DNA of 64,000 nt, taken from assembly GCA_964304625.1 (NCBI GenBank), contig OZ199838.1, positions 14,689,907 through 14,753,906 of the forward strand, in the 5' to 3' direction. This document shows, in pieces, positions 8,587 to 39,615 of this stretch. This DNA comes from Kudoa neothunni. Taxonomy: Eukaryota > Animalia > Cnidaria. The number at the start of each line of letters is the position of its first letter. The stretch's first letter is position 1. The notes under the pieces were generated by a model. That model did not search any database. It was not told where the DNA came from and saw only the letters and a program-made list of their open reading frames with translations. The translations under genes and the position numbers were made by a program.

Positions 8587-11500
8587 GGGACGGCCAAGTT
8601 TCGCCGGAGCCAGGTTTTGCCGGAATCGCGCACGCCCGTTTTCTCGTATATAATCGGCGACGCGCAGATGTCGGCGCGCGTATAAAATCATGAACCAAGA
8701 AATTAGTGCTGATTTTATTATTACCAAGACAAAAAAAAATAATGACAAGCTTTTTTATAATGGTTTTTTTTATAATAAAGATTATAAAACAAAAGTTTGT
8801 CAGTATTGGAGGTGTGAAAAACGAGGATGTAAAGGTAGGCTAAGAACATTTCCGGCAGAACAGATAGAGAGGTTGGATACGCTAGGCTTTCATAGTCACT
8901 TAGTATCCGAGGAAGAAAAAAACAAGCAATTTTTCAAGGATAAAATCAAGCATATCGCAGAAAATACTGTATATCCAACTAATAAAGTGTATGATATCGC
9001 AACTAATCAAGAAGATGTCCAAAGATTGCCAAATATTCCAAAAAAGTCCGTTTATCAGGTGATTCGAGATATACGAAAACGAAAGAGTATTGATGTAAAT
9101 CCTGAGACAAATCTTTGTGGATCGATAATGACCTTAAGGAACAAAAATTTTTGTATATACGATTCTGGATCCGAGGATAGCAATAGAATTATTATTTTTA
9201 CAACAGAAGAAAATCTTTCGCACCTAAAACATTCCAAATTCTGGGTTTGCGACGGAACGTTCAAGGTTGTTCCAAGAACGTTCTCCCAAATGTACACCAT
9301 TCATGGTCACGTTTTTAACAAAATATTACCGTTGGTGTTTATTTTAATGACAGATAGGTCGGAGAGCAGCTATGACCGTATTATTCAAATTATAAGAGAG
9401 AAAGGAAACCTGGAACTTCCCAACATTATCATAGATTTTGAGGTTGCTGCGTATAATGCATTTAAAAAAGAAACAAAACGTAATGTGTTCTTCTGCTTGT
9501 TCCATCTTGGCCAATGCGTTAATCGAAGATTGCATAAATTTGGTCTATCAAAGTTTTATCAGGAAGATAGTGAGTTTAAACTTTTTGTCAAGTGCGTTAC
9601 TTCGTTAGCCTTTGTACCGAAAGATTGCGTGAAGATAGAATTTGAAAAATTACTTCTACAAGCCAAGAAAATTGAAATAAAGAATTTGAATCTATTCCTA
9701 AGTTATTTTGAGAAGAACTTCATTAATAGTAACAAATACCCTGTTGAATCATAGAATGCTCATTCTCGAACCCTTAATGACATACCTCTAACCTCCAATA
9801 ATGCAGAAAGTTTCCATCGACATTTTTATGCTAGGTTTGATCAAGCACATTCAGGTCTACTAACTTTTATTAAAAATTTACAAGAGAGACAAAGCTCAGT
9901 TGAACAAGAAGCCATGTTTTATTTATGCAATCCTAATAATGATCCTCGGAGTAAAGATGTTAAATTAAAAATGGATAAGTTGAAATCTTTATGTGAGAGT
10001 TACCATCGATATTACGATACATTCTTCGTTCAGGCTATTTCCAAAGAATATAACTGGTATATAGAGTAACCCCAATTTCCCCTACCTGCATTTCGCTTTA
10101 TAATATCTTAGTTTTTCTAATTCGTATGCTGTCGCTGATAATGAGTACAGGAAAAAATTGCTATTAAATAGAAGTTCCAGGTTATCGATATTGAAAAATG
10201 TGTGATCATATGTGTCATTTCCATGTATTCGCAGATCACTTGAAAAGCATCATTTTGTTTCCCTTAGATTATTTTTTAATTCTCGTTATCACTCAATATA
10301 TATTTTTCGAACATAAATTCAAACCTTTCCATGTAACAAATTTTCCTTCCTTTTTAGCATTAAGTATTGCATTTTCTATGTAAAAATATTTTCTCCGCCT
10401 TCGCATCAATTAATACTACATTTAGATTTTTAGAACAAGAATTAGTCATAGAAATAGCCAATAACTGCAGGTATTTTTATAGCAACTTTTGATTACGTTT
10501 AGATTTTCCGGATACATGTCAGACCTTTCGCCAATCTTGTGACAACAATTTATTCTTACCTAGTTACTCTTGTTTTTTTTTGTAAATTTAATCGATTTTT
10601 TATTTATTAAGAATATAACAGCGTTTATTTCCGATATTAATTATTTTATAATTCCAAATGTTTTCACCGACCTATTATTTAATTATTTAAGTTATTACAA
10701 AATGGAATAATATAATATGAAAGATATTTATAAATTACTATAGTTATGATGTTTAAGAAAGGATAAGAATGTTTTTAACTAACTATCTTACCTATTCCAT
10801 ACAAAACATCTTATCTTTGACAAATTCGTTAATATCGCATGCGCCTTTAGCCACCCATGGGTTTATATTAGGGGTTTTTTACTTTTAGCGTACGTATATA
10901 AATCTGTATTCTTGTAGTTGCAATGAAATAATTTTATTTTAGTTAATAAATTTTTTATATGGCCATTATATTAGCTTCCTGTGTTTTATTTCAGGATAAT
11001 ACTTTAATCATCTATCTACAAATTGAATTTTACAAACAACTATACATACACATAGATATTATTTTAAGTATTTGTAGGGTTAATATAAATACCTTAAGCA
11101 TGATCAAAATTAATTACATGTCAAACAAATAAATTTATAATTACCCAAAAAACTCAATTTTTGTCTTTAAACTATATGCAACATTCAATTTAAAAAACAA
11201 TATAACCGCTAATTCGTGCATATACATACATATTTATTAATTGATCTGGCATATTTTTATATATTCTATATGTTAGGAAATGGAAACGAATATATAAATT
11301 AAAATTATCGATGGAATGATAGACCTTTGTTAAAATTTACAGATCAGAAGTGTAGATTCTGCTTCAATTCCTTTATTTTCCATTCCCATGCATTTTTTTG
11401 ACTGCTGTATTGAGAAAGATAGAAGATATAATTGTATCTTATAAAATTGGCTTGCCGTTATAAAATAGAAATAATCACCTAAAAGGTTCATCAAAAAAAT

Positions 11501-18661: not shown

Positions 18662-21600
18662 ATGGCCCCAAAAAAAGACATTAATGTAAAAATGAGCACT
18701 AAAGTATGAAAAATTCACATATTGAATTTTTGGTGATGAGGGATTATTTTTGGTGGCATATGTTTGTGGTTTTACTTATTCACATACATAGTGCAACACA
18801 AATGACCTTATTATACCGAAAACCGTTTGTGTTAGCGGCGCTCGTGTTGTTTATTCCAATAAAAACATCAACACAAAACTTCTCTCCAATTACAACATTC
18901 TGAAAACGATCGGCAAAGGAAATTTTGCCAAAGTTAAATTGGCCCGGCATAAATTAACCAAAAAAAAGGTTACTCTTAATTCATGCTGAATCAACTGACA
19001 TTTGGGACCGATTGAATATATTATGTGGGTTTAGGTGGCAATCAAAATAGTGGACAAAACTAGAGTCAGTCCAGAAAATCTTGTCAAAGTAACCATGAGC
19101 TGATAACTATTCTTTTTTGATGATTATCATTATAATCATCGATCTTTTTAGTTGTTTCGAGAGGTCAAAATTATGAAAATGTTAGACCATCCTAATATAG
19201 GTAAGTTTGTCTTTATTTTAAATTTTAATTTGACGAAAAAATCACATTATTCTAGTAAAATTGTACGAAGTGCTCCAAACAGAAACAACACTTTTTCTGG
19301 TGATGGAGTACGTAAGCGGGGGCGAGCTGTTTGATTATTTGGTTGATAACGGAAAAATGAAGGAATCTCATGCTAGAGAAAAATTTCGCCAGGTAATTTT
19401 TAACGATATTATTCTCGAATGTGTATATGTTCAATTCTTAAATTGATACAATTTTTATTTCCTCCATTAGATCGTTTCAGCCATCCAATATTGTCATTCG
19501 AAAGGAGTGGTGCATCGTGATTTGAAAGTATGATTAGTTGAAGTGCTGTTTTCCTCAATTTTTCTATTTCATTATTACCAATTATATCACAGGCTGAAAA
19601 CCTTCTTTTGGATGAATTCAATAACGTGAAAATTGTTGATTTTGGCTTCAGTAATGAGTTCTCTATGGACAACAAATTGGACACATTCTGCGGAAGTCCA
19701 CCCTATGCTGCCCCAGAATTGTTTCTAGGGCGCAGTTATGTTGGCCCAGAAGTTGATGTATGGTCACTTGGGGTCATTTTGTACACTATTGTCACTGGAT
19801 CGTTACCTTTTGATGGACGAACACTAAAAGAACTCAAACACAATGTGCTTGCGTGTCATTTGAGAGTTCCTTTCTATCTAACTTCGGAGTGTGATATTTT
19901 ACTGCGAAAAATGATTGTGCGCGACCCCAGAAAACGAAAACCTCTTGAATTTATTATGAAAGATAAATGGCTCAATCTCGACTACGATAAAAGTCTTCAA
20001 TTGAGACCGTTCCAATGCGTGAATGAAAATTATGATGATATCGATCGAATCAGTAATTATGAATTAGTTGCCATAATTCGAAATTTTCGGTGTGCTGTCA
20101 CATTAGATAAAATGGTCAAAATGGGCATTAGTCGCGATTTCATTACCAACACTCTTGAAACTAATGAATACAACCATGTTATGGCTACCTATCTTATACT
20201 AAACAATGATAGAGTAAATTTTGCGATTTTCAATCAATCTTCGAATTACATTAATGTGTATTTGTGTTTAGTTTGATTCTAATTTTGTAAACACTACGTC
20301 TGAAAGCGATGAACTGTTGTGGAAAATGAACAGAAAGTTTGGATTGAGCTCAACTGAAACCAGAGAAAAGTAATATATATTGGGATGTAATATACTCTCC
20401 TTCTGATGGAATTTTTCATTCAGAGTTCCACCCAAACATGCAATATCTTTGGGCGCAAAATGTGATGGACCCAAAAGTCGTGGCGCCATCAGCACATCAT
20501 CCGATAAATTATCCACAGAAATTTCTACAACTGCTACACGTATTTATGTTTTTATTGCTTAGTCTATTTAGTTGATATTTCATTAGCTAAAAAACAAAAT
20601 ACATCCAACAGGAGCTTCTTTGCTTCCAAATTCAAAAATCGTGGCCGTTCCAAAACTGTAGATACACCCGTCGAAAATGACTCCAAGGATACCAACTTTT
20701 CTGCCGACAGTAATTTTGCTGGTAGTAACACAATTAACAATGCGGATATCGATAAAATAACCACAAATGGAAGGTATTGCGTTATTGGCTGCATACGGTC
20801 AGATTTGACTGTAACTAAAGCATGTCGTTTTCGATTAAACGTCTAACTAATAGGGCCGATGCCTCTGGGGGAGTATACGGCTCATGTTAATTAATTGATG
20901 GTTTTTTGGAGAATAAGATCATTTCGCTTTTAACTATTAGCCTTAGTTTAGGGTAGTGGTGCACAAACTTTTGGAGCCTCGGGCCAAATTTTAATCTTCG
21001 AAAACTTCCAGGGCCAGAGAATTTACAACTAAGGATATAGCTCACACTTTGAATAAGTTTACTAATTTCGAAACGCCATATTCAAAATAATTCATAAGTA
21101 ATAAGTTTATTAAATTTTTTAAATTGAATAACGACTGACATTGGAAACAAATAATATTCGTCCCCTATTGAGTAAAATATTTTTATATCCAGGCGTCATT
21201 AAATTTTCTGTTCTCATCATAAACCTTTTTTCGAATTCCAGTTATTTTAACTTGGAAATAAAATAAAAATAAGCTGAATTAAATATGAGATATATCTTGG
21301 GCGAGCAAAATGGTTGTATGCTCATATGTGAAGTGCAGTTGAAATTGCCCATAGTTATGTGCTTATTATCGGCTTTAACAGATGTTTGTCCCTTGTGTCA
21401 ATTTTTCTTTTACGTTTTATTTATTATTCTTACAGAAACTTTTCGAAAACTTTGATTTTTTAGCACAATATAAATACCCTATTATTTCGCATCGTTTATA
21501 AAACGTGCTTTAATTATTAACCTTGTTTTAACTGAACATAAACTTCGGGTCAGCACTGTCAAGCGAATTTTGAAATCATAAATCCCCCTAGTACCAGTAT

Positions 21601-24600
21601 GATTTTCTTCTCCTCCATACAGATTCAAGAAGAAATAATAAAAATTAATATATGGATTTCGCTTAAGAAAACATTTTTTCCATATCACATGGTGAAGTGA
21701 CTAAAAGCAATAAATCTTTTTGCTTATTTAGAGAGTTTTTTGATGTTTCGTTCTTAATGGTTCGTATATAATAAAAACCAATTGAAGTTAAATAATCTAA
21801 TGCTTTTTTAATTTAATTTAAAAGTATACCTTTAATCCGAACTTTATTAGGGTTCACCGCGGGCAACGAAGAAGCTCATTGAGGGCCGGGGTTTGTGCAC
21901 CCCTGATTTAGGAGGTCTTCTTCTGATTATTTTCTTTATAAATGTGCGGAAAATTTCAAACGTTAAATCAATTAAAATTAATTTCGTAACATTATTTTTC
22001 CTGCCAAGTGTTTATTTTTAAATTTAAATGAACTAGAGAAAAATATTGCATCCCCATGGTGCTCTATTTTGAATAATTTTATTGACTTTAATACTAAAAT
22101 AGATATTTAAAAATTTGAAAATTAACTTAACATAGTCATACAGGGATCATTGTTGTGTATTATCTGATCAATAATTATTGTCATTATTTGTAATTGTATA
22201 TCAACTTCAGGAATAAATAAATATATATATATATATATATACTAAAATTCAGTCTAGTGTATTTCATTTGGAAATATCCGGTGTTACAGAATTGTAAATA
22301 TAGATTAATTAAAAAATGCAAATTAATGTTTGTGATCATGCGCGGAAATTGATTGATATACGTAGATTGTTTATATCATTTTATTTTATTTACAGCTCAG
22401 GTACAAAATAAATTTTCAATGTATTTTAAAAACTAGGGAAAATTTATTTGTGGTTATAATACTGACAAAGTTTTTCAAAATTTTAGTTTTTGAAATCATT
22501 ATAAACTAACTATTTTACGTATTATGTTATCTTAAGCCCGCAAACAAAAAATTCTAAAAAATTTGTAAATTTTTTGAGTGTGACATCCGAATTTTAGAAT
22601 AACTGTTTGGTAATATATTAGATTAATCATCAAACATTAGATTCCATATTTTTCGACCTTCTTCGCATTTATTTGTAATACTCATATGCCAGATGTAATC
22701 ATGCTTCTCTTTACGTAGAGACATTCCTGATAACCGACGTGGGTTAGTTACCACATAGATTACAGTTTGCAGTCAATTTTGATCACATGGTTATTGTGCT
22801 AAATTATGGTTTCAAGCGAAACCCTCGGTTATCTTCACCTGAATTCGAAGAAACAAAATAAATTGATAAAAACCATGTTAATATTGGTAAATTTCATTTA
22901 ATATATTTATTTAATTTGAAATGTATTTTTGACGAATAGTTCATTTACATGATATTCGACTAAATGTAATCTCATCATCTCAGAATTTTCATATGTAATG
23001 TAGCGTAATTTTCGCTTGAATGCACACCAAATGGCTTCGGCGCTATTTTTCGCAAAAAATTAGTTTTTAAAAATTCAATATTATCATTAACAGTATCGTG
23101 TTCATAATCCAATTCTTTCAGCTTGTTTTAAGCCGACTAATTTTTTATCGGACCACATAATTGTTCAGCTCACTGCATATTCGAAAACTATGTGTTTGCA
23201 GTATTAATTTTATTTCCGTTTTCAATTGTTACTAAGGATATCAATTATCCATCAAAGTTTATAAATATTGTATCCATTTTTCGTATATAAATGTGTTTTT
23301 TAATACAGACTTAATTAATAGCCATTGCTTGATTTACAAATAGTAAAATAAAGTTACGATATCAAATAAATTTGTAACGATTGAATTTTGATTAAAAGGA
23401 CTTTTATTTTGATCGTATTTAATTAAATCGAAAGCAGTGATGATTACTGAGATGAAATGATAAACGTAGAATTCTAAAAAAATCAATTTGTGACCTTCAT
23501 TAAGTCACAAGTAAATAATTTATCATTATTGTGTTAAAATATTATTTGAAACAATAAATTCCGGTTTAGTCATATCAATATAATCTAATGTTTTTGAAAA
23601 TAATATTATTCGGATTTTATATTTTTGGAATAATGTATCCTTAATGTTAAAATTAATCATAGCAATCATTATTTTAATATTCAATCATTGAATATTAATT
23701 TTCCGTAAGTGTGTGATTGAGTCACTTGTTTTTGCATTATACATCATTTTTATCGTATGATCACGATATTATATAAATTATTATAATGATATTTGATTGA
23801 AGCTATTATATTTTTTCGAGAATATCCATTTGATTATTAATTGATTTTAATGTGATAAGCAGAAGTGTTAGAATAAATTTCCGGCAAGCACGGTAATAAA
23901 TGTTTCGTCGTTTATTTCTAGATATAAAATCGAGAACTTCACGCTGTAGCTTCTGCTTTTGTGCATCTAACTCATATTTTTTAGTTGGACCGTTTCTGAT
24001 ATTCCTTGCAACAGTGCCAAACAATTAAATACCACCACCGATGGTATATGACAATAACTTGATCAGTTTTATACGTTTTTTGTTAAGAACCACACGTCCA
24101 ACTTGTTAATAATTCAGTTGAAACCACTACTACCGCCACTGCTGCAAATCCATTGAGTTGTCATCAACATCGTAACACTGCTGACGATGTTTTCGATGAA
24201 ATGGAACAACCAAAACGACGTTTCAGTTTATTGTATTATTTTATTGTCTAGTCTATTGTTGATAGATATTAATGTGTGTTTGTATATATTTTAGTCGTAA
24301 CGTCAGAAATCCCTTCAGGTCATTTAGGAATGATTCGTTTGATCATCAACCCAGTTGTGAAGAAATTGAAACCAAAACTAGAGGTATTTCACATACCGCT
24401 GCCTACAATCACGTCAACCGTATGAGTATTGACGAGGCATACGATTCGGTTATCAACCACGATCTCATCGCATCAACCAAACCTCCAAGAATAGCTTCCA
24501 ACACCAAACTTTCGTAAAATTATCACCAAAGATATCACAGAATCTTTTGTTAAACTGTCTGATCTGCTTATTAAGTTAAATGTCAAGTTCAAACATCAAC

Positions 24601-24989
24601 AACCTTACAAATTGATGGCTTGTGTAAATTGGAAAGATTTTATCACAGCTATCGCTAATTTGGAAAGTGAATCAAAACAGCACGACGCACACTCAAATCT
24701 TGTCAACTATAGCGAATCTGATACTTTTGTTCTCTTTGAGATCGAAGTCAATCGTGTTATATTCAATAATTTTTATACTATACGATTAAAACGTCTCAAC
24801 GGGGGCGCTATTTATTATAAAGAAAGTGGCTTCGAATATTCTGAATTTTCTCGATTTTGTAGTTGCTAAAAAAAAATAATTCAAAACTCAACTGTATCTG
24901 CTACTAGTCAAATTTATCAAAACTTTCCCAACACGTCTATAGTTGCTGAGTCCTGTGGAAACTTGATGTATCTAGTTTGTCAACACTAA
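18662..24989 (+). CDS. MARK: MARK/PAR-1 serine/threonine kinase (kinase, UBA, spacer and KA1 domains), multi-exon with a ~3.3 kb TE-containing intron
   Basis: Contains [93 protein letters not shown]-like [11 protein letters not shown] and KA1-like [14 protein letters not shown]. The start codon is uncertain, and two apparent indels lie in the 3' exons. Confidence 0.9.
20954..21905. mobile_element. hAT-type non-autonomous element in the MARK intron
   Basis: TIRs tagtggtgcacaaac / gtttgtgcacccctg, with 8-bp flanks gtttaggg / atttagga (6/8). Confidence 0.75.
22990..23180 (-). pseudogene. Possible Tc1-like transposase remnant in the MARK intron
   Basis: Minus-strand fragments IMWSDKK and [11 protein letters not shown] resemble the Tc1 WSDE and ENLW..LKR motifs. 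TIRs were not found. Confidence 0.3.
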
Positions 24990-27357: not shown

Positions 27358-29581
27358 TCAAAGACTCAACAACATAGTTCTGGGATCTTCAAGAGATTGT
27401 TTGATTTTCCTCAAAAAAGTGACAGCTTCTCTACCATCAATCAAACGATGGTCATATGTTAGTGCTAGATACATCATAGGACGTATAACAATCTAGATGT
27501 AACCAAAATAGATTAGAACCCTAATAATCGCAGTTTAGCTTTACATTTCCATTAACAACAACTGGCCTCTCATTGATCGCATGCATTCCAAGAATAGAAG
27601 ATTGTGGAGGGTTGATAATAGGAGTACCCATAAGAGATCCAAAAACACCACCATTACTTATGGTAAATGTCCCGCCATCCATGTCTTCTGCTTTGAGCTT
27701 TCCAGATCTCGACTACAAACAAGTAAAGTGATATTTTGTAGGGCTATATAAAATTAGCATTGAACGTTAGAAATACCTCCTCAGCGTAGTTGGAAAGAGT
27801 CTTTTCAATATCAGCAAAATTGAGTTTTTGGACATCTCTAATAACCGGCACAACAAGACCCTACACAGTACATCAGTAAAAGTCACCGAATTATACAATA
27901 ATTTATGAGCAAGTTACTTTAGGACTTGCAACCGCAACACTTATATCGACGTAATTATGGTAAATAATCTCATCACCAGCAATGTCTAGTTAAGCTCAAA
28001 AGCACAATTTCAAAGTTAACAAATCAACATACATGCATTAACTGTGGGAATCTGCTGTAACGCATAACAAGATGACTTAATAAACGCGGACATAAAACCC
28101 AATTTAACATTATGTTTTTTCTCAAATGAATCCTTGTATGTTTTCCTCATTTCAATAAGATTACTAGTAATATAGTTCGCTCTAATAAAGTAACACCAGC
28201 TAGCAACAACCTCATATCAACTTCATTAAAAGTGGTCAACATTGCACAACTATTTTGAGCATGTTTCAGACGTTTGGCTATTGTCTGACGAATTCTAGTC
28301 ATTTTAACCTGGATAAAAGTTTCACAAAACTACTACAATATTTAAACACCCACTCTAGTGGTTTCTCTTTCGTTAGATACTGTCGCTATATCAACAGCAG
28401 AAGGAACCTGGTGCACAATTTTCGGTTTGTCACCAACAGAAACCTTTGTAGCGTTAGGAGGTGATATCGGAGTGGTTTCTTTAGTCTCCACACTACTCTC
28501 CACTTTGAAAGAACCCTCTTTCGGCTCAACATTTTTTTGGATAATAGAAGCCAATTTAGAATTAACTGGAGCTTTTTCTCCAGATTGAATCAAAAATTTA
28601 GATATAACACCATCGCAAGGACTCACCACTTCAATCGTGGTCTAAATAAATATATCTATAGGAGCTATTGTCAGTGTTAGCATTATTCACCTTGTCTGTT
28701 TCAATCTCTCCAATAACCTCATCCAACAATATAACATCTCCGAGATCTAATAAATAAATGAATGGTGGCGGAACAATAGAAAACGACTTTTATGCCATCG
28801 TAGATCCCCTTCAATGATAGATTCTGGATAGGCTGGTGCATTTAACAAGATTTCTTCACCAGATACTAAACAATATTATTTTTTCCAGTAGAAAAATTGA
28901 AAATACCATCTTCCTGGGATGTACTACTACTACTATTACTACTTTCGGGTTCGTTTGATAAGGGAGTGATATCACAGACAACTTGGTTTGGAGTAATTTT
29001 ATCGTTATCCTTAAAAAGCAATGCTTTGATAACACCATCACATGGAGACAGTATTTGTAGAGCAGTCTAAATTCGATACATAGATTTATTATTCGCTAGC
29101 ATTATTCACCTTATCAGTTTCAAGTTCTCCAATAACATCATCAGTGGAAACCTTATCCCCCTCAGCTTTGTGAGATATAACGAACGTCACTCAAAAAACA
29201 ACGTACATTTCAACCATCTTATTTCTGCTTGCGATACTGACTCTGGAAACGCAGGCACTTTCACATCAATAACTAAGAAATGTTGCACATATTTAGCCAA
29301 TTAAAATTATGACAATTTACGATTTTTAGATGTAGTTGTAAAGAAACGAGAGCTTCTATTAAAATCGGAATCAGAATGTGTTTTACTAAGGATAAGCGAT
29401 AAAAATACTTGTAAATAGAACCGAAGTAACCAGCATTGTTATCACATGCTAAGCCACTAATTTTAAAAAATCTTTCGCATCGCATCTAATTAAATAACCA
29501 CTAGAGCTGTTGGGTAGTTAAAATATCTACCGGCCGTATTCTAACCAACTCATGTAGTCGACACAGCCGAGACATATTCAT
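27358..29581 (-). CDS. DLST: Dihydrolipoyl succinyltransferase (E2 of 2-oxoglutarate dehydrogenase) with two lipoyl domains
   Basis: Arg-rich presequence followed by two lipoyl domains (ELETDK, EIETDK). Catalytic-domain motifs [68 protein letters not shown] and [18 protein letters not shown] are present. Confidence 0.95.
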
Positions 29582-35198: not shown

Positions 35199-38100
35199 TT
35201 AAAAAACACTACAAACTACATATTTAGCGATGATCACCAGGGCGCTGGTAAAGGAGCGTATATCATTAAAAGAACCATGTGTTTTTGAGTTAACTGAGGT
35301 TAAACTGAGTAGAAATTCAATATTTTCCATGATATGTTTAGGTAAGGGTGCAGAATTTTTAGATAGGGTTTGATTCACATGATCGATGAAATTTGCTTTG
35401 ATTGTTTTACTAAGTACAAACAATCTGTAAATGAAAGTGCCGACTTGTGAGGACAGCTCTGAGATTAGTAAATGGGACCAAAGGCGTTCAAAAACAATCT
35501 AACAACAACCATTCAACAAAATACTAAAATATGACAATTAATTACAGGTAAAAGTTCTTCTACTTTTTCATTAACAGACAATTGTATTGTGTTACTGATG
35601 GGACAATCTTGGGTGTTGTTGGTCACAGCTTCAGCTAATGCATCGACAATATCGGTACAAATATAGTAAGTTTGAATAAGAATGTCATCATTGAAATGTT
35701 GCAGGCCGAATTTCAAGTAATAAAACATAAGAGCTATATATTTTGTTTCGACATTGAGTAAGCATACAGGGTAGGATTTTGAGTAGAAACACAAAAAGTT
35801 CAGAACATTCGAGATTAGACTATCCTAAAAACATCAATTATATTTACGCAAAAAAAAAACAACTACAAAAAATCTCTTAATAAGATGATAATGTTTTTCT
35901 TAATTTAATAACTCTGTTTAATATAAAAATATTTTACCACATCATTAATATTGATTAGGATAATTCTAAGTCCATAGTTGATTGTATGGACTATGTCGCT
36001 ATCGAGTGAATTAATATTGAAATCCTCTATAAAACAAATGGGATGTAATTCCACTTACAAATATAACACAATCATTACTACTAGCACAAATATATTCGGT
36101 GAATTTGATCACAGTGAAAAATAACATGGATAACGTTTTAAAATAAAGTTCAGCGTCACGTTTTTTCCAAGTGGTCGAGTATTCTAGATAGGAAAGATAA
36201 CGGAAATAACTTTGCTAGATGGTGAGTACCTTCGACTGATTCTGAGAAGTCGTTAAGAAAACTGATAAAGTTGGAATTGAATTTTCTCGAAAGATTAGCT
36301 GTGTGTGAAATTGGTGACTTTTTGAGTAGTATCAAATGGGAGAATGCTCGTTGGTAATGTTTGTTGATGTGGTAAGCCAACTTGAGATATTTAGGGAAAA
36401 TATGTAGTGCGATTCCACCGAGTTGAAGGAAAAAAGTGTTAGTGAGATCTTCGGCGAGCTTGGCAAACAAATGGTAATCGTTTTCAGCTGACACGATACT
36501 GAAATTGATGGGCAATAAAGTGTGTAATAGTTTGCAAGTGTGGCTTTTTTGTATTTGAAGGTAGTTTTTTAGGAAATCATCATTCAAATCATAAATTTGT
36601 CGAATAAACGAGTTCAACGGATCAAAAAAATTGAATTTAACACAACACTCATACAATTTGTTCAGCAGCTCAGTGAGAACGTTATCTTGGAACGGGCAAC
36701 CTTTTGCGATTATCAAATTGATATAATCAAAAGCATATTGGCCCGAAAAATACAACACATCATTTGTGGCTAAATTCAATTTTAGAGATTCGATTAACAA
36801 CTCAAGAAAAAATGAGATATCCGCATGAGTAATTGAGTTGGATTGATATTGGTGATCGACTGATGTATGTAAGTTGGATTCAACATCGTTATCATACAAA
36901 AACAGTTTATACGCAATAACAACGATATATTTGTTGACCAAGCACACATATCTGTAGTTGTTTCTCTTTAGAAATCCACTTAACAATGAGAGAGATGGGG
37001 TGGGATTGATTGATGTATTCTGAAGATGGTCGACGAGGTAACCAAGTGTCTTAAGAAAATATCTACAGAAATGCAACCAACAAGATTCCATCTGTCTTAG
37101 ATGTTTATCACAAATGGCGTAGTAGGTTTCGAACTTAATCACCAATAGAAAGATTCCAAATTCCAAAATACACACAACCAACCTCAACTTGTTAGGTATG
37201 TTGGCTGAGATGGTGGGATCATCCTCGAATTGACTCATATCGGTATTTATAGATTTGGAGAAATTTTTCAACAGATAAGCTATTGTGTTTAATTTCTTCT
37301 CAAAGTACACGGTTATGTATTCCACATAATTGTCGGTGTTGGTGGGTCTACCAATTTGTGTCAGACCTAATTCGTAGCTACAGTTCAACAAAATGGCTGT
37401 ATAGTTGGAATGGGAATTGGATGCCGATTCGTTATCTGCAATCAAAACCAACTCAGAAATCAAAATGATCAATCTGCTCAACTGATGAGACGACAGTAGG
37501 AATGTGTCCAACAAATTGGGGTCAGCTTCGTGCTTGTACTCTTTGAGAATGGGGAGAAATGACGCGTACGAATTCAGGAACATTTCAGACAACTTTCTCA
37601 TAACCAACTCATAGTTAACTCTGGTCACAACAGAGAGATCTCGTATATCTAGGTGGTCAATTTGAGTGGCTTTGTCTTTGGAAATGTTTCCAATGGTGAC
37701 AGAATGTAAATAGTTGTTTCTATCGAATGTCTCAACGGGAATCGACCCTACTGGAGCGTATAACAAACTTTGAATAGTTAAAAGACTGAATCCATTGATT
37801 ATATTGTTGACATGGGGGATATTTTCGAGTCTGAAAGGTGGGGGTGAACTGTCTGCGTCCAATCTTGTGCAGATATGAATAAGAGCTGACAAAATATTAT
37901 CCACTGAATCACTGAATATAATCGAATCGGATGATTTGTCAGTTGGATATTGTGGTTTATCGCTACCGCCTATCGAGTTGAAGGAATTGCATAAATGAAA
38001 CTCCCTCACTCGAGCACCTGCAACCTGCTGATACACATTAACAAATATTTCCGATAAATAGGCCATATCGATCTGGATTTTGGTTTTTCGAAAAATTTGT

Positions 38101-39615
38101 GAGGTAATAATTTTGTAAAACAATTCCGACAAACCCCACACAACATAAGGTATATTGTAATCGAACCTGTTGTGAAAATACATAAACGTGTTTAACACTG
38201 AGAGCAATACGGAATCAGCACATGATTGAAATAGACTCAATGGTCCACCCAAAAAACACAATAAACCCACACAAGATATACACATATGGAATATCTCACA
38301 ATCTTGCATATATTTTATTAGGCACTATATAACAGTGATTAGGAAATTAATATAAATGGTCTCTTCAAATTACCTTAAAAAGTACCACTACTACAGCTTG
38401 TGATAAGATAATATCAGCCCATGCGATAGGAGGAGAAAATTCCAAAATCATCGTTGCAGGATTAATGTAACACATTTTATTGGTACATCGTTTGAAATTC
38501 CAATTAAACACACCATACAAATTATTGAACACAAGTATAATGGCGTTTCTGTGGAGATTAGGCAGATCGATACTTTTCATAGCAGCAACAAAAATACTCA
38601 ATAGATAATCGTTCTAATATAATATTTTTATTATAAAATCTAGAAATTAGAAAGAACGAATGATAATCTACCTGAATATATTCAAAAAAACGAAGGTCAT
38701 TCTCATCTATATACTCAGTCTTATTGAGATAGTTGGAATAGTCGCTGAGAATGGCTCCAAAGAATCTCAACCCCAATATCTTTTCTTGAATTGTCTCAGT
38801 CGTTATAGATGCCATCATTGGTTGAAGTATCATCAGATCCAAATAATCGGTTGTTAGGGCGTCCCAATGACACCTCATAACACATCCCACATTTTCAATT
38901 AGTGGATCCATCACTGGCATATGCTCACTGTAACTATATTCAATTAAGATTATACTTAGTTGTTAACTGTGAACAAAACTTACGTTGAAATTTCAAGAAG
39001 CGTTTTCATTAAAATGTGCAATAAATGTTTGATAAATTCGAGAGGGAACAGCTTTTTTTGTTTGGTCACGGTTTTCTTTAATATGTTTAGGCAAGAAAGG
39101 AGGATAAAATTGTTTCTGTATTTTTCTATATACAATTGAATTTTAAGAAAATAAAATCAGAGGTATTTGAGGATAATTTGATCTTAAAATAATCGATTTA
39201 ACTCTGAATAATTAATTTATCAAATTATTATATTTATCATTTATTATTATTATTAATTATTATAATTAGGGTTGGAAAGATTGAAAAAACAAAGCATTAA
39301 GCCTCATCATTAACGACCTAAAAGTCGAATAGGCAGAACTATTTACCCAAAATAAACGCACAAATATGTATATTCTTCGAGGATCTGTACCATTTCTCAC
39401 ACAAATTCTCAAAATTCTTCATATCGATATCATTTCTCTAATATTTTCATTAAAACATCAACAATATAATATATAATAATAAGTCGTTCTGAAACTTACC
39501 ATCACAATGAGATCACACGTCTCCAATAAAGAGTCTAATAATTCTCTGTCAGGCATGGCTACATTCATGAAATGAATGACTATTATTGGTAATAATACTA
39601 AGGGATCAACTTCAT
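35199..39615 (-). CDS. Large HEAT/ARM-repeat karyopherin-beta-like protein, probably a divergent exportin-4
   Basis: A multi-exon, helical, Leu-rich protein including a 717-aa ORF. The N-terminal YRSSKNIHICAFILEKYRNNFILLSCLNIL and C-terminal FLCFYSKSYPVCLLNVETKYIALMFYYLKFGL...GTFIYRLFVL segments resemble exportin-4 from recall. The first exon needs a 1-nt correction. Confidence 0.55.

Follow-up and report, generated by a model that had tools for sequence, protein, structure and literature searches.

The gene question

In a 64,000-nucleotide stretch of the Kudoa neothunni genome (contig OZ199838.1, positions 14,689,907 to 14,753,906, hereafter the window), the minus strand raised the question of whether a DLST enzyme can carry two lipoyl domains, where the second one would have come from, and what it might do. 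E2o, the DLST-type E2, has been described with a single lipoyl domain (PMC8146983), and multiple lipoyl domains are typical of E2p (PMC6270654). The original prediction, made from the sequence alone, was that duplication of a three-exon module had given this gene two tandem lipoyl domains joined by a Ser-rich linker, that the copies had diverged and stayed intact, and that the additional domain might serve several E1 enzymes.

A 14-exon gene model

Positions 29485-27358 of the minus strand yielded a 14-exon DLST gene model with a 1500-nt reading frame (499 codons plus TGA; Table 1). The boundaries were checked by script with the exons left unjoined, and all 13 introns were of the GT-AG type and 41 to 64 nt long. 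Across the 14 exons, the phases were consistent, the split codons encoded ordinary residues, and no in-frame stops were found. The K. neothunni genome paper gives a median intron length of 49 bp and a genomic GC content of 30.41% (PMC12239612); the GC content of the window was about 30%. The protein of about 499 residues predicted from it would consist of a presequence, two lipoyl domains, and a succinyltransferase core, with a linker of 25 residues between the lipoyl domains and one of 63 residues between lipoyl domain 2 and the core.

The weakest part of the model was its 5' end. The ATG at position 29485 opened exon 1, which was followed by a 53-nt intron, and a candidate exon further upstream could be spliced to position 29485 in frame. 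A GT...AG pair inside the first intron (29386-29408, minus strand) spanned only 23 nt, which was judged too little for an intron, and the model kept the 53-nt version. The RFF.TT-like motif in exon 2 resembles the sequence just ahead of the human DLST lipoyl domain. At the other end of the lipoyl region, the third exon of module 2, whose end had been left open in the original prediction, stopped at a GTGGGT donor at position 28353.

Table 1. Coordinates of the DLST exons and of the other features discussed in the text
Feature	Location	Strand	Description
Candidate further upstream exon	window 29581-29546	-	In-frame splicing to 29485 possible
Exon 1	window 29409..29485	-	ATG and start of presequence; placed by phase bookkeeping and GT-AG; 5' end uncertain
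Exon 2	window 29321..29355	-	End of presequence; RFF.TT-like motif just ahead of lipoyl domain 1
Module 1 exon a (exon 3)	window 29207..29272	-	First strands of lipoyl domain 1; PAFPES..RW.K
Module 1 exon b (exon 4)	window 29110..29165	-	56 nt; ends in lipoyl-lysine motif ETDK
Intron b-c, module 1	window 29067..29109	-	First 13 bases GTGAATAATGCTA, the same as the start of the module 2 counterpart (28690-28642)
Module 1 exon c (exon 5)	window 28907..29066	-	C-terminal half of lipoyl domain 1 and Ser/Glu-rich linker
Module 2 exon a (exon 6)	window 28788..28865	-	End of linker and first strands of lipoyl domain 2; PAYPES..RW.K
Module 2 exon b (exon 7)	window 28691..28746	-	56 nt; ends in ETDK
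Module 2 exon c (exon 8)	window 28354..28641	-	C-terminal half of lipoyl domain 2 and linker of about 63 residues to core
Six catalytic 2-oxoacid_dh exons	window 28308-28211, 28163-28033, 27985-27918, 27860-27777, 27712-27545, 27492-27358	-	Last exon includes TGA
MARK/SIK-like kinase	window 18788-24830	+	Pkinase, UBA, KA1; convergent to DLST
MARK/SIK-like kinase, related species	L027:1176-3800		Pkinase, UBA, KA1; convergent to DLST
FLYWCH/MULE open reading frame	window 8690-9754	+	Intact, 354 residues
Longest open reading frame of window	window 36156-38309	-	717 residues, ATG-initiated
DLAT-like gene	C1:5385971-5388313 (exon layout: C1:5386604-5389813, L003)		Two lipoyl domains, E3_binding stretch, core
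DBT-like gene	C3:10015768-10017114		One lipoyl domain, E3_binding, core; best match branched-chain E2 chain 2ihw
Lipoyl synthase	C2:2727196		LIAS_N
Isolated E3_binding match	C1:1659143-1659247		29 bits
Large DLST exon, unrelated eukaryote	L031:9158-10249		271 residues

The catalytic exons identify a succinyltransferase

The catalytic exons supported the assignment of the gene to DLST (E2o). Five of them had Pfam PF00198 matches, which lay between positions 9 and 232 of the 232-position model, and the active-site motif in the last exon, DHRLIDG, had the required DHRxxDG form. For the four catalytic exons that were tested, the best family was NCBIfam TIGR01347 (sucB), with scores of 103, 77.5, 57.6, and 53 bits, and any acetyltransferase model scored at most 60 bits on the same exons. 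These four of the six catalytic exons summed to about 291 bits against TIGR01347, for which the curated cut-off of 378.65 bits refers to the whole protein. In the case of the most conserved catalytic exon, c5, the eight best solved chains were all succinyltransferases (79 to 87 bits), and E2p and E2b chains reached no more than 51 bits.

Two lipoyl modules with a common exon architecture

Ahead of the core, the model contained two adjoining three-exon modules, each of which encoded one 73-residue lipoyl domain. Translation of the exons reproduced the peptides on which the claim of two tandem lipoyl domains had been based, and the gene model closed around them. Both modules started in phase 1, were interrupted by introns in phase 1 after RW.K and in phase 0 immediately behind ETDK, and contained a 56-nt middle exon and a 41-nt intron between exons a and b. 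The intron positions, phases, middle exons, and ETDK motif common to the two modules bore out the idea of a duplicated three-exon unit, and the linker between the modules, which had been predicted to be Ser-rich, proved to be about 25 residues long and rich in both Ser and Glu.

The module cores, compared over whole codons only, aligned without gaps and were identical at 32 of 72 residues (44%) and similar at 48 of 72. Eleven of 18 residues were identical in exon b, the third exons matched each other with a BLASTP E value of 6e-08, and the DNA identity of the aligned codons was 54%. The values of pS and pN were 0.68 and 0.39, respectively, with synonymous sites near saturation, so dN/dS for this comparison rests on saturated sites. 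The chance that 94 random codons of the same composition would stay open was about 5e-4. Because both frames were open and pS was higher than pN, both copies appeared to be under selection, in agreement with the prediction that they had diverged and yet stayed intact.

The equivalent introns of the two modules had also diverged, except at the start of the intron between exons b and c, where the first 13 bases were identical. This short identity could represent a gene-conversion tract or a conserved splicing element.

It was also important to consider whether the second domain is an artefact of collapsed or expanded haplotypes, since the published assembly was derived from low-coverage contaminant reads of a fish genome project (PMC12239612). 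The DNA-level divergence of the copies and of their introns is beyond any assembler error; together with the near-saturation of synonymous sites, it indicated that the duplication is old and not created by assembly. Thus, the module comparisons supported an origin by internal tandem duplication, after which both copies diverged and stayed intact.

Both lipoyl domains are of the E2o type

In both domains, ETDK, the GD turn, and SPCDGVI were retained, and the loop beside the lipoyl-lysine was of the E2o type (PxxPES..RW.K). The PA(F/Y)PES..RW.K sequence of both exons a aligned with PAFAES..RWEK in 9rca, a solved DLST chain. The solved-structure matches of module 1 exon a were E2o lipoyl domains only (best match 9rca, E = 0.005). 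For module 2 exon a, the top five matches were all E2o lipoyl domains (9rca, E = 0.004), and two weaker designed proteins ranked below them. The natural solved matches of the two exons a were the DLST chains 9rca, 8x02, 7uol, and 6h05 and the Azotobacter chain 1ghj.

The remaining lipoyl exons were less uniform. Exon b of module 1 matched the lipoyl domains of both E2p and E2o structures, and exon b of module 2 gave weak matches to E2 lipoyl domains. The best solved-structure match of module 1 exon c was the lipoyl domain of DLST chain 9rca; module 2 exon c matched generic biotinyl or lipoyl folds only. In Pfam scans performed exon by exon, no single exon exceeded the PF00364 (Biotin_lipoyl) cut-off of 22.1 bits, as each domain is spread across three exons: the two exons c scored 15.3 bits each (model positions 42/44-73), and module 1 exon b scored 20.5 bits in the six-frame genome scan. 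The exon-by-exon Pfam scan found no E3_binding match on module 2 exon c and its linker.

BLOSUM scores summed over exons were 185 for the modules against each other, compared to 81 to 102 for the modules against the lipoyl domains of DLAT in the same genome; against a bacterial E2, the modules scored 136 to 154. These scores and the types of structural matches argued that both lipoyl domains are E2o-type domains derived from one another and that neither was captured from DLAT. A capture by exon shuffling also fits poorly with the loop next to the lipoyl-lysine, as the modules were without the one-residue-longer PSLSPTM loop of DLAT lipoyl domains, which we take to be the E2p type. Such a capture, or the assembly artefact considered above, would be an extremely improbable source of the second domain.

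Other E2 and lipoylation genes in the genome

The K. neothunni assembly comprises 40.2 Mb in three chromosome scaffolds and a circular mitochondrial genome (PMC12239612). Neither SL1 nor cuticle-collagen domains were detected, which goes against a nematode of the Strongyloides family as the source; the collagen result is weak, since its controls gave no matches either. Six-frame scans of the whole genome (40,260,978 bases, 4 contigs) identified three E2 genes, namely DLST, a DLAT-like gene, and a DBT-like gene. The best solved-structure matches of the DLAT-like gene were DLAT chains, and each of its lipoyl domains was located within a single exon, in contrast to the three exons used for each lipoyl domain of DLST. 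The OGDH-type E1 C-terminal domain had one match only in the genome. Lipoyl synthase was present, as were two lipoyl transferase or ligase genes (LplA-B_cat, LplA/LipB-type) on C1.

These results gave no support to two suggestions about the role of the extra domain. The original prediction had proposed to check whether other E2 genes are absent from the genome; because the DLAT-like gene (with two lipoyl domains of its own) and the DBT-like gene are present, the idea that the extra lipoyl domain replaces lost complexes is not supported. Likewise, the idea that it serves several E1 partners is not suggested by a genome with a single OGDH-type E1 match.

The scans also detected an isolated E3_binding match, with no lipoyl or catalytic match anywhere near it, which may belong to a divergent E3-binding protein (PDHX).

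Expression and use of the two modules

We propose that an ancient intragenic tandem duplication in the single DLST gene of this genome copied the three lipoyl exons, and that the duplicated segment would have had one end in the intron that precedes exon a and the other in the part of exon c that codes for the linker. The short introns would then be removed one by one, and both modules would reach the mRNA. Both ETDK lysines would be lipoylated by the lipoyl synthase and transferases encoded in the genome, and both arms would shuttle succinyl groups among the single OGDH-type E1, the E2 active site, and E3. Two arms would double the carriers per core or extend their reach, as in multi-domain pyruvate dehydrogenase E2 chains. 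Judged from the gene structure and the retained motifs, it is reasonably probable that the introns are removed individually and that the product has two lipoylated arms on a succinyltransferase core. The broader proposal, that K. neothunni, and perhaps Kudoa or Myxozoa, constitutively makes an E2o with two functional lipoylated arms that selection has kept since the old duplication, would be an evenly balanced one.

The main competing explanation is that the modules are used alternatively. Tandemly duplicated exons are often alternatively spliced in animals, and skipping exons 3-5, 4-6, or 5-7 would in each case remove 282 or 294 nt and preserve the frame because the module phases are identical. 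The resulting single-domain isoforms would carry different or chimeric lipoyl domains and could be made alone or beside the two-domain form, and the 13-base identity at the start of the b-c introns could be a splicing element common to both modules. However, inclusion of both modules keeps the frame as well, unlike the usual case of classic mutually exclusive exons, in which joint inclusion disrupts it. The lengths of the introns also favor their removal one by one, since a module could be skipped only by excising a "super-intron" of about 450 nt, compared with 41 to 64 nt for every intron of the model. For these reasons, we consider alternative use rather unlikely. Among listed sequencing runs, no RNA run contained this stretch, and three raw metatranscriptomic runs labelled as this organism and one contig set gave 0 reads on the gene, a result that carries no weight for or against its expression. 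It agrees with the K. neothunni genome paper, in which transcriptome reads mapping to the parasite were almost absent (PMC12239612).

A different possibility is that both modules are present in the protein and one carrier works, with the other domain being an unlipoylated or poorly recognized spacer that extends the reach of the arm or binds a partner. The third exon of module 2 matched E2o lipoyl domains more weakly than that of module 1, and the copies have diverged to 44% protein identity. Engineered E. coli pyruvate dehydrogenase E2 chains reportedly tolerate unlipoylated, spacer-like domains. Against this, both copies keep every one of the lipoyl-domain motifs listed above, including the loop next to the lipoyl-lysine, and a passive domain is considered very unlikely. 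A chain with two working arms is the reading that we prefer.

Relatives of the gene

An exhaustive protein search with a 98-codon stretch (28348-28641; module 2 exon c and two intron codons) found no eukaryotic relative, and its matches were limited to P0001, a bacterial E2 with two lipoyl domains, and a single long protein that is unrelated. A profile of the two third exons returned no matches in a word search. The catalytic region gave more: the sole word-search match of exon c2 was an open reading frame of contig L027, and exon c5 matched 120 exon-sized open reading frames from many eukaryotes, among which there was one close relative, P0079, on the same contig.

Contig L027 is 4175 nt long with a GC content of 21%, and its exons were 80% identical in protein to the catalytic exons. 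Its sequence starts 64 nt ahead of the first catalytic exon and does not reach the lipoyl exons. Between this species and K. neothunni, pS was 0.65, which is as saturated as the value between the modules, so the order of duplication and speciation is unreadable from it. A MARK/SIK-like kinase gene was located downstream of DLST and convergent to it in both species, and it spanned about 6 kb in K. neothunni versus about 2.6 kb in L027. This indicated that the local gene order has been kept and that introns and spacers differ greatly in size.

A large DLST exon was also observed in an unrelated eukaryote (Logan run SRR33854204). Part of a lipoyl domain, the linker, and one half of the DLST core were encoded by this exon, which had one lipoyl match and was separated from the next exon by a gap of 27 nt; it is uninformative as regards Myxozoa.

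Other features of the window

Two further open reading frames in the window were conspicuous. The plus-strand frame encoded FLYWCH zinc-finger and MULE transposase domains and represents either a DNA transposon or a domesticated transposase. The longest open reading frame of the window, on the minus strand, had no Pfam match at E<=0.001.

Comparison with known E2 chains

The K. neothunni gene resembled E2o chains in its succinyltransferase core with the DHRxxDG motif, in the E2o-type lipoyl domain located directly after the presequence, and in having no recognizable E3_binding domain; E2o chains also gave the top solved-structure matches of catalytic exon c5 and of exon a of each module. It differed from them in carrying two tandem lipoyl modules in place of one, which left the catalytic assignment unaffected. 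DLAT, the E2 of pyruvate dehydrogenase, has two lipoyl domains in mammals and three in E. coli AceF. The arrangement of tandem lipoyl domains on one E2 chain with flexible linkers of 25 to 30 residues is common to DLAT (PMC6270654) and the K. neothunni protein, but DLAT belongs to another catalytic subfamily, has another type of lipoyl loop, and contains an E3_binding domain. In the bacterial protein P0001, too, a 2-oxoacid_dh core is preceded by two tandem lipoyl domains that carry ETDK and APCDG motifs. P0001 is distinguished from the DLST gene by its E3_binding domain, by repeats that are almost identical, and by the lack of introns; it is of bacterial type and no relative of the DLST gene.

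Our literature search found no description of a eukaryotic E2o with two lipoyl domains, and we know of no other eukaryotic E2o with more than one. The predicted two-lipoyl DLST is regarded as a real domain-number variant of a well-known enzyme, and one that is unusual for DLST. It leaves the understanding of the E2 enzyme family unchanged. Pyruvate dehydrogenase E2 chains are a classic example of variation in lipoyl-domain number, and a natural two-domain E2o, if confirmed, would make it possible to test whether extra arms alter the flux, reach, or redox behavior of the 24-mer OGDH core. In addition, such an E2o would offer a clean example of how duplicating an entire exon module adds a domain, here in a genome that is otherwise noted for its massive loss of genes.
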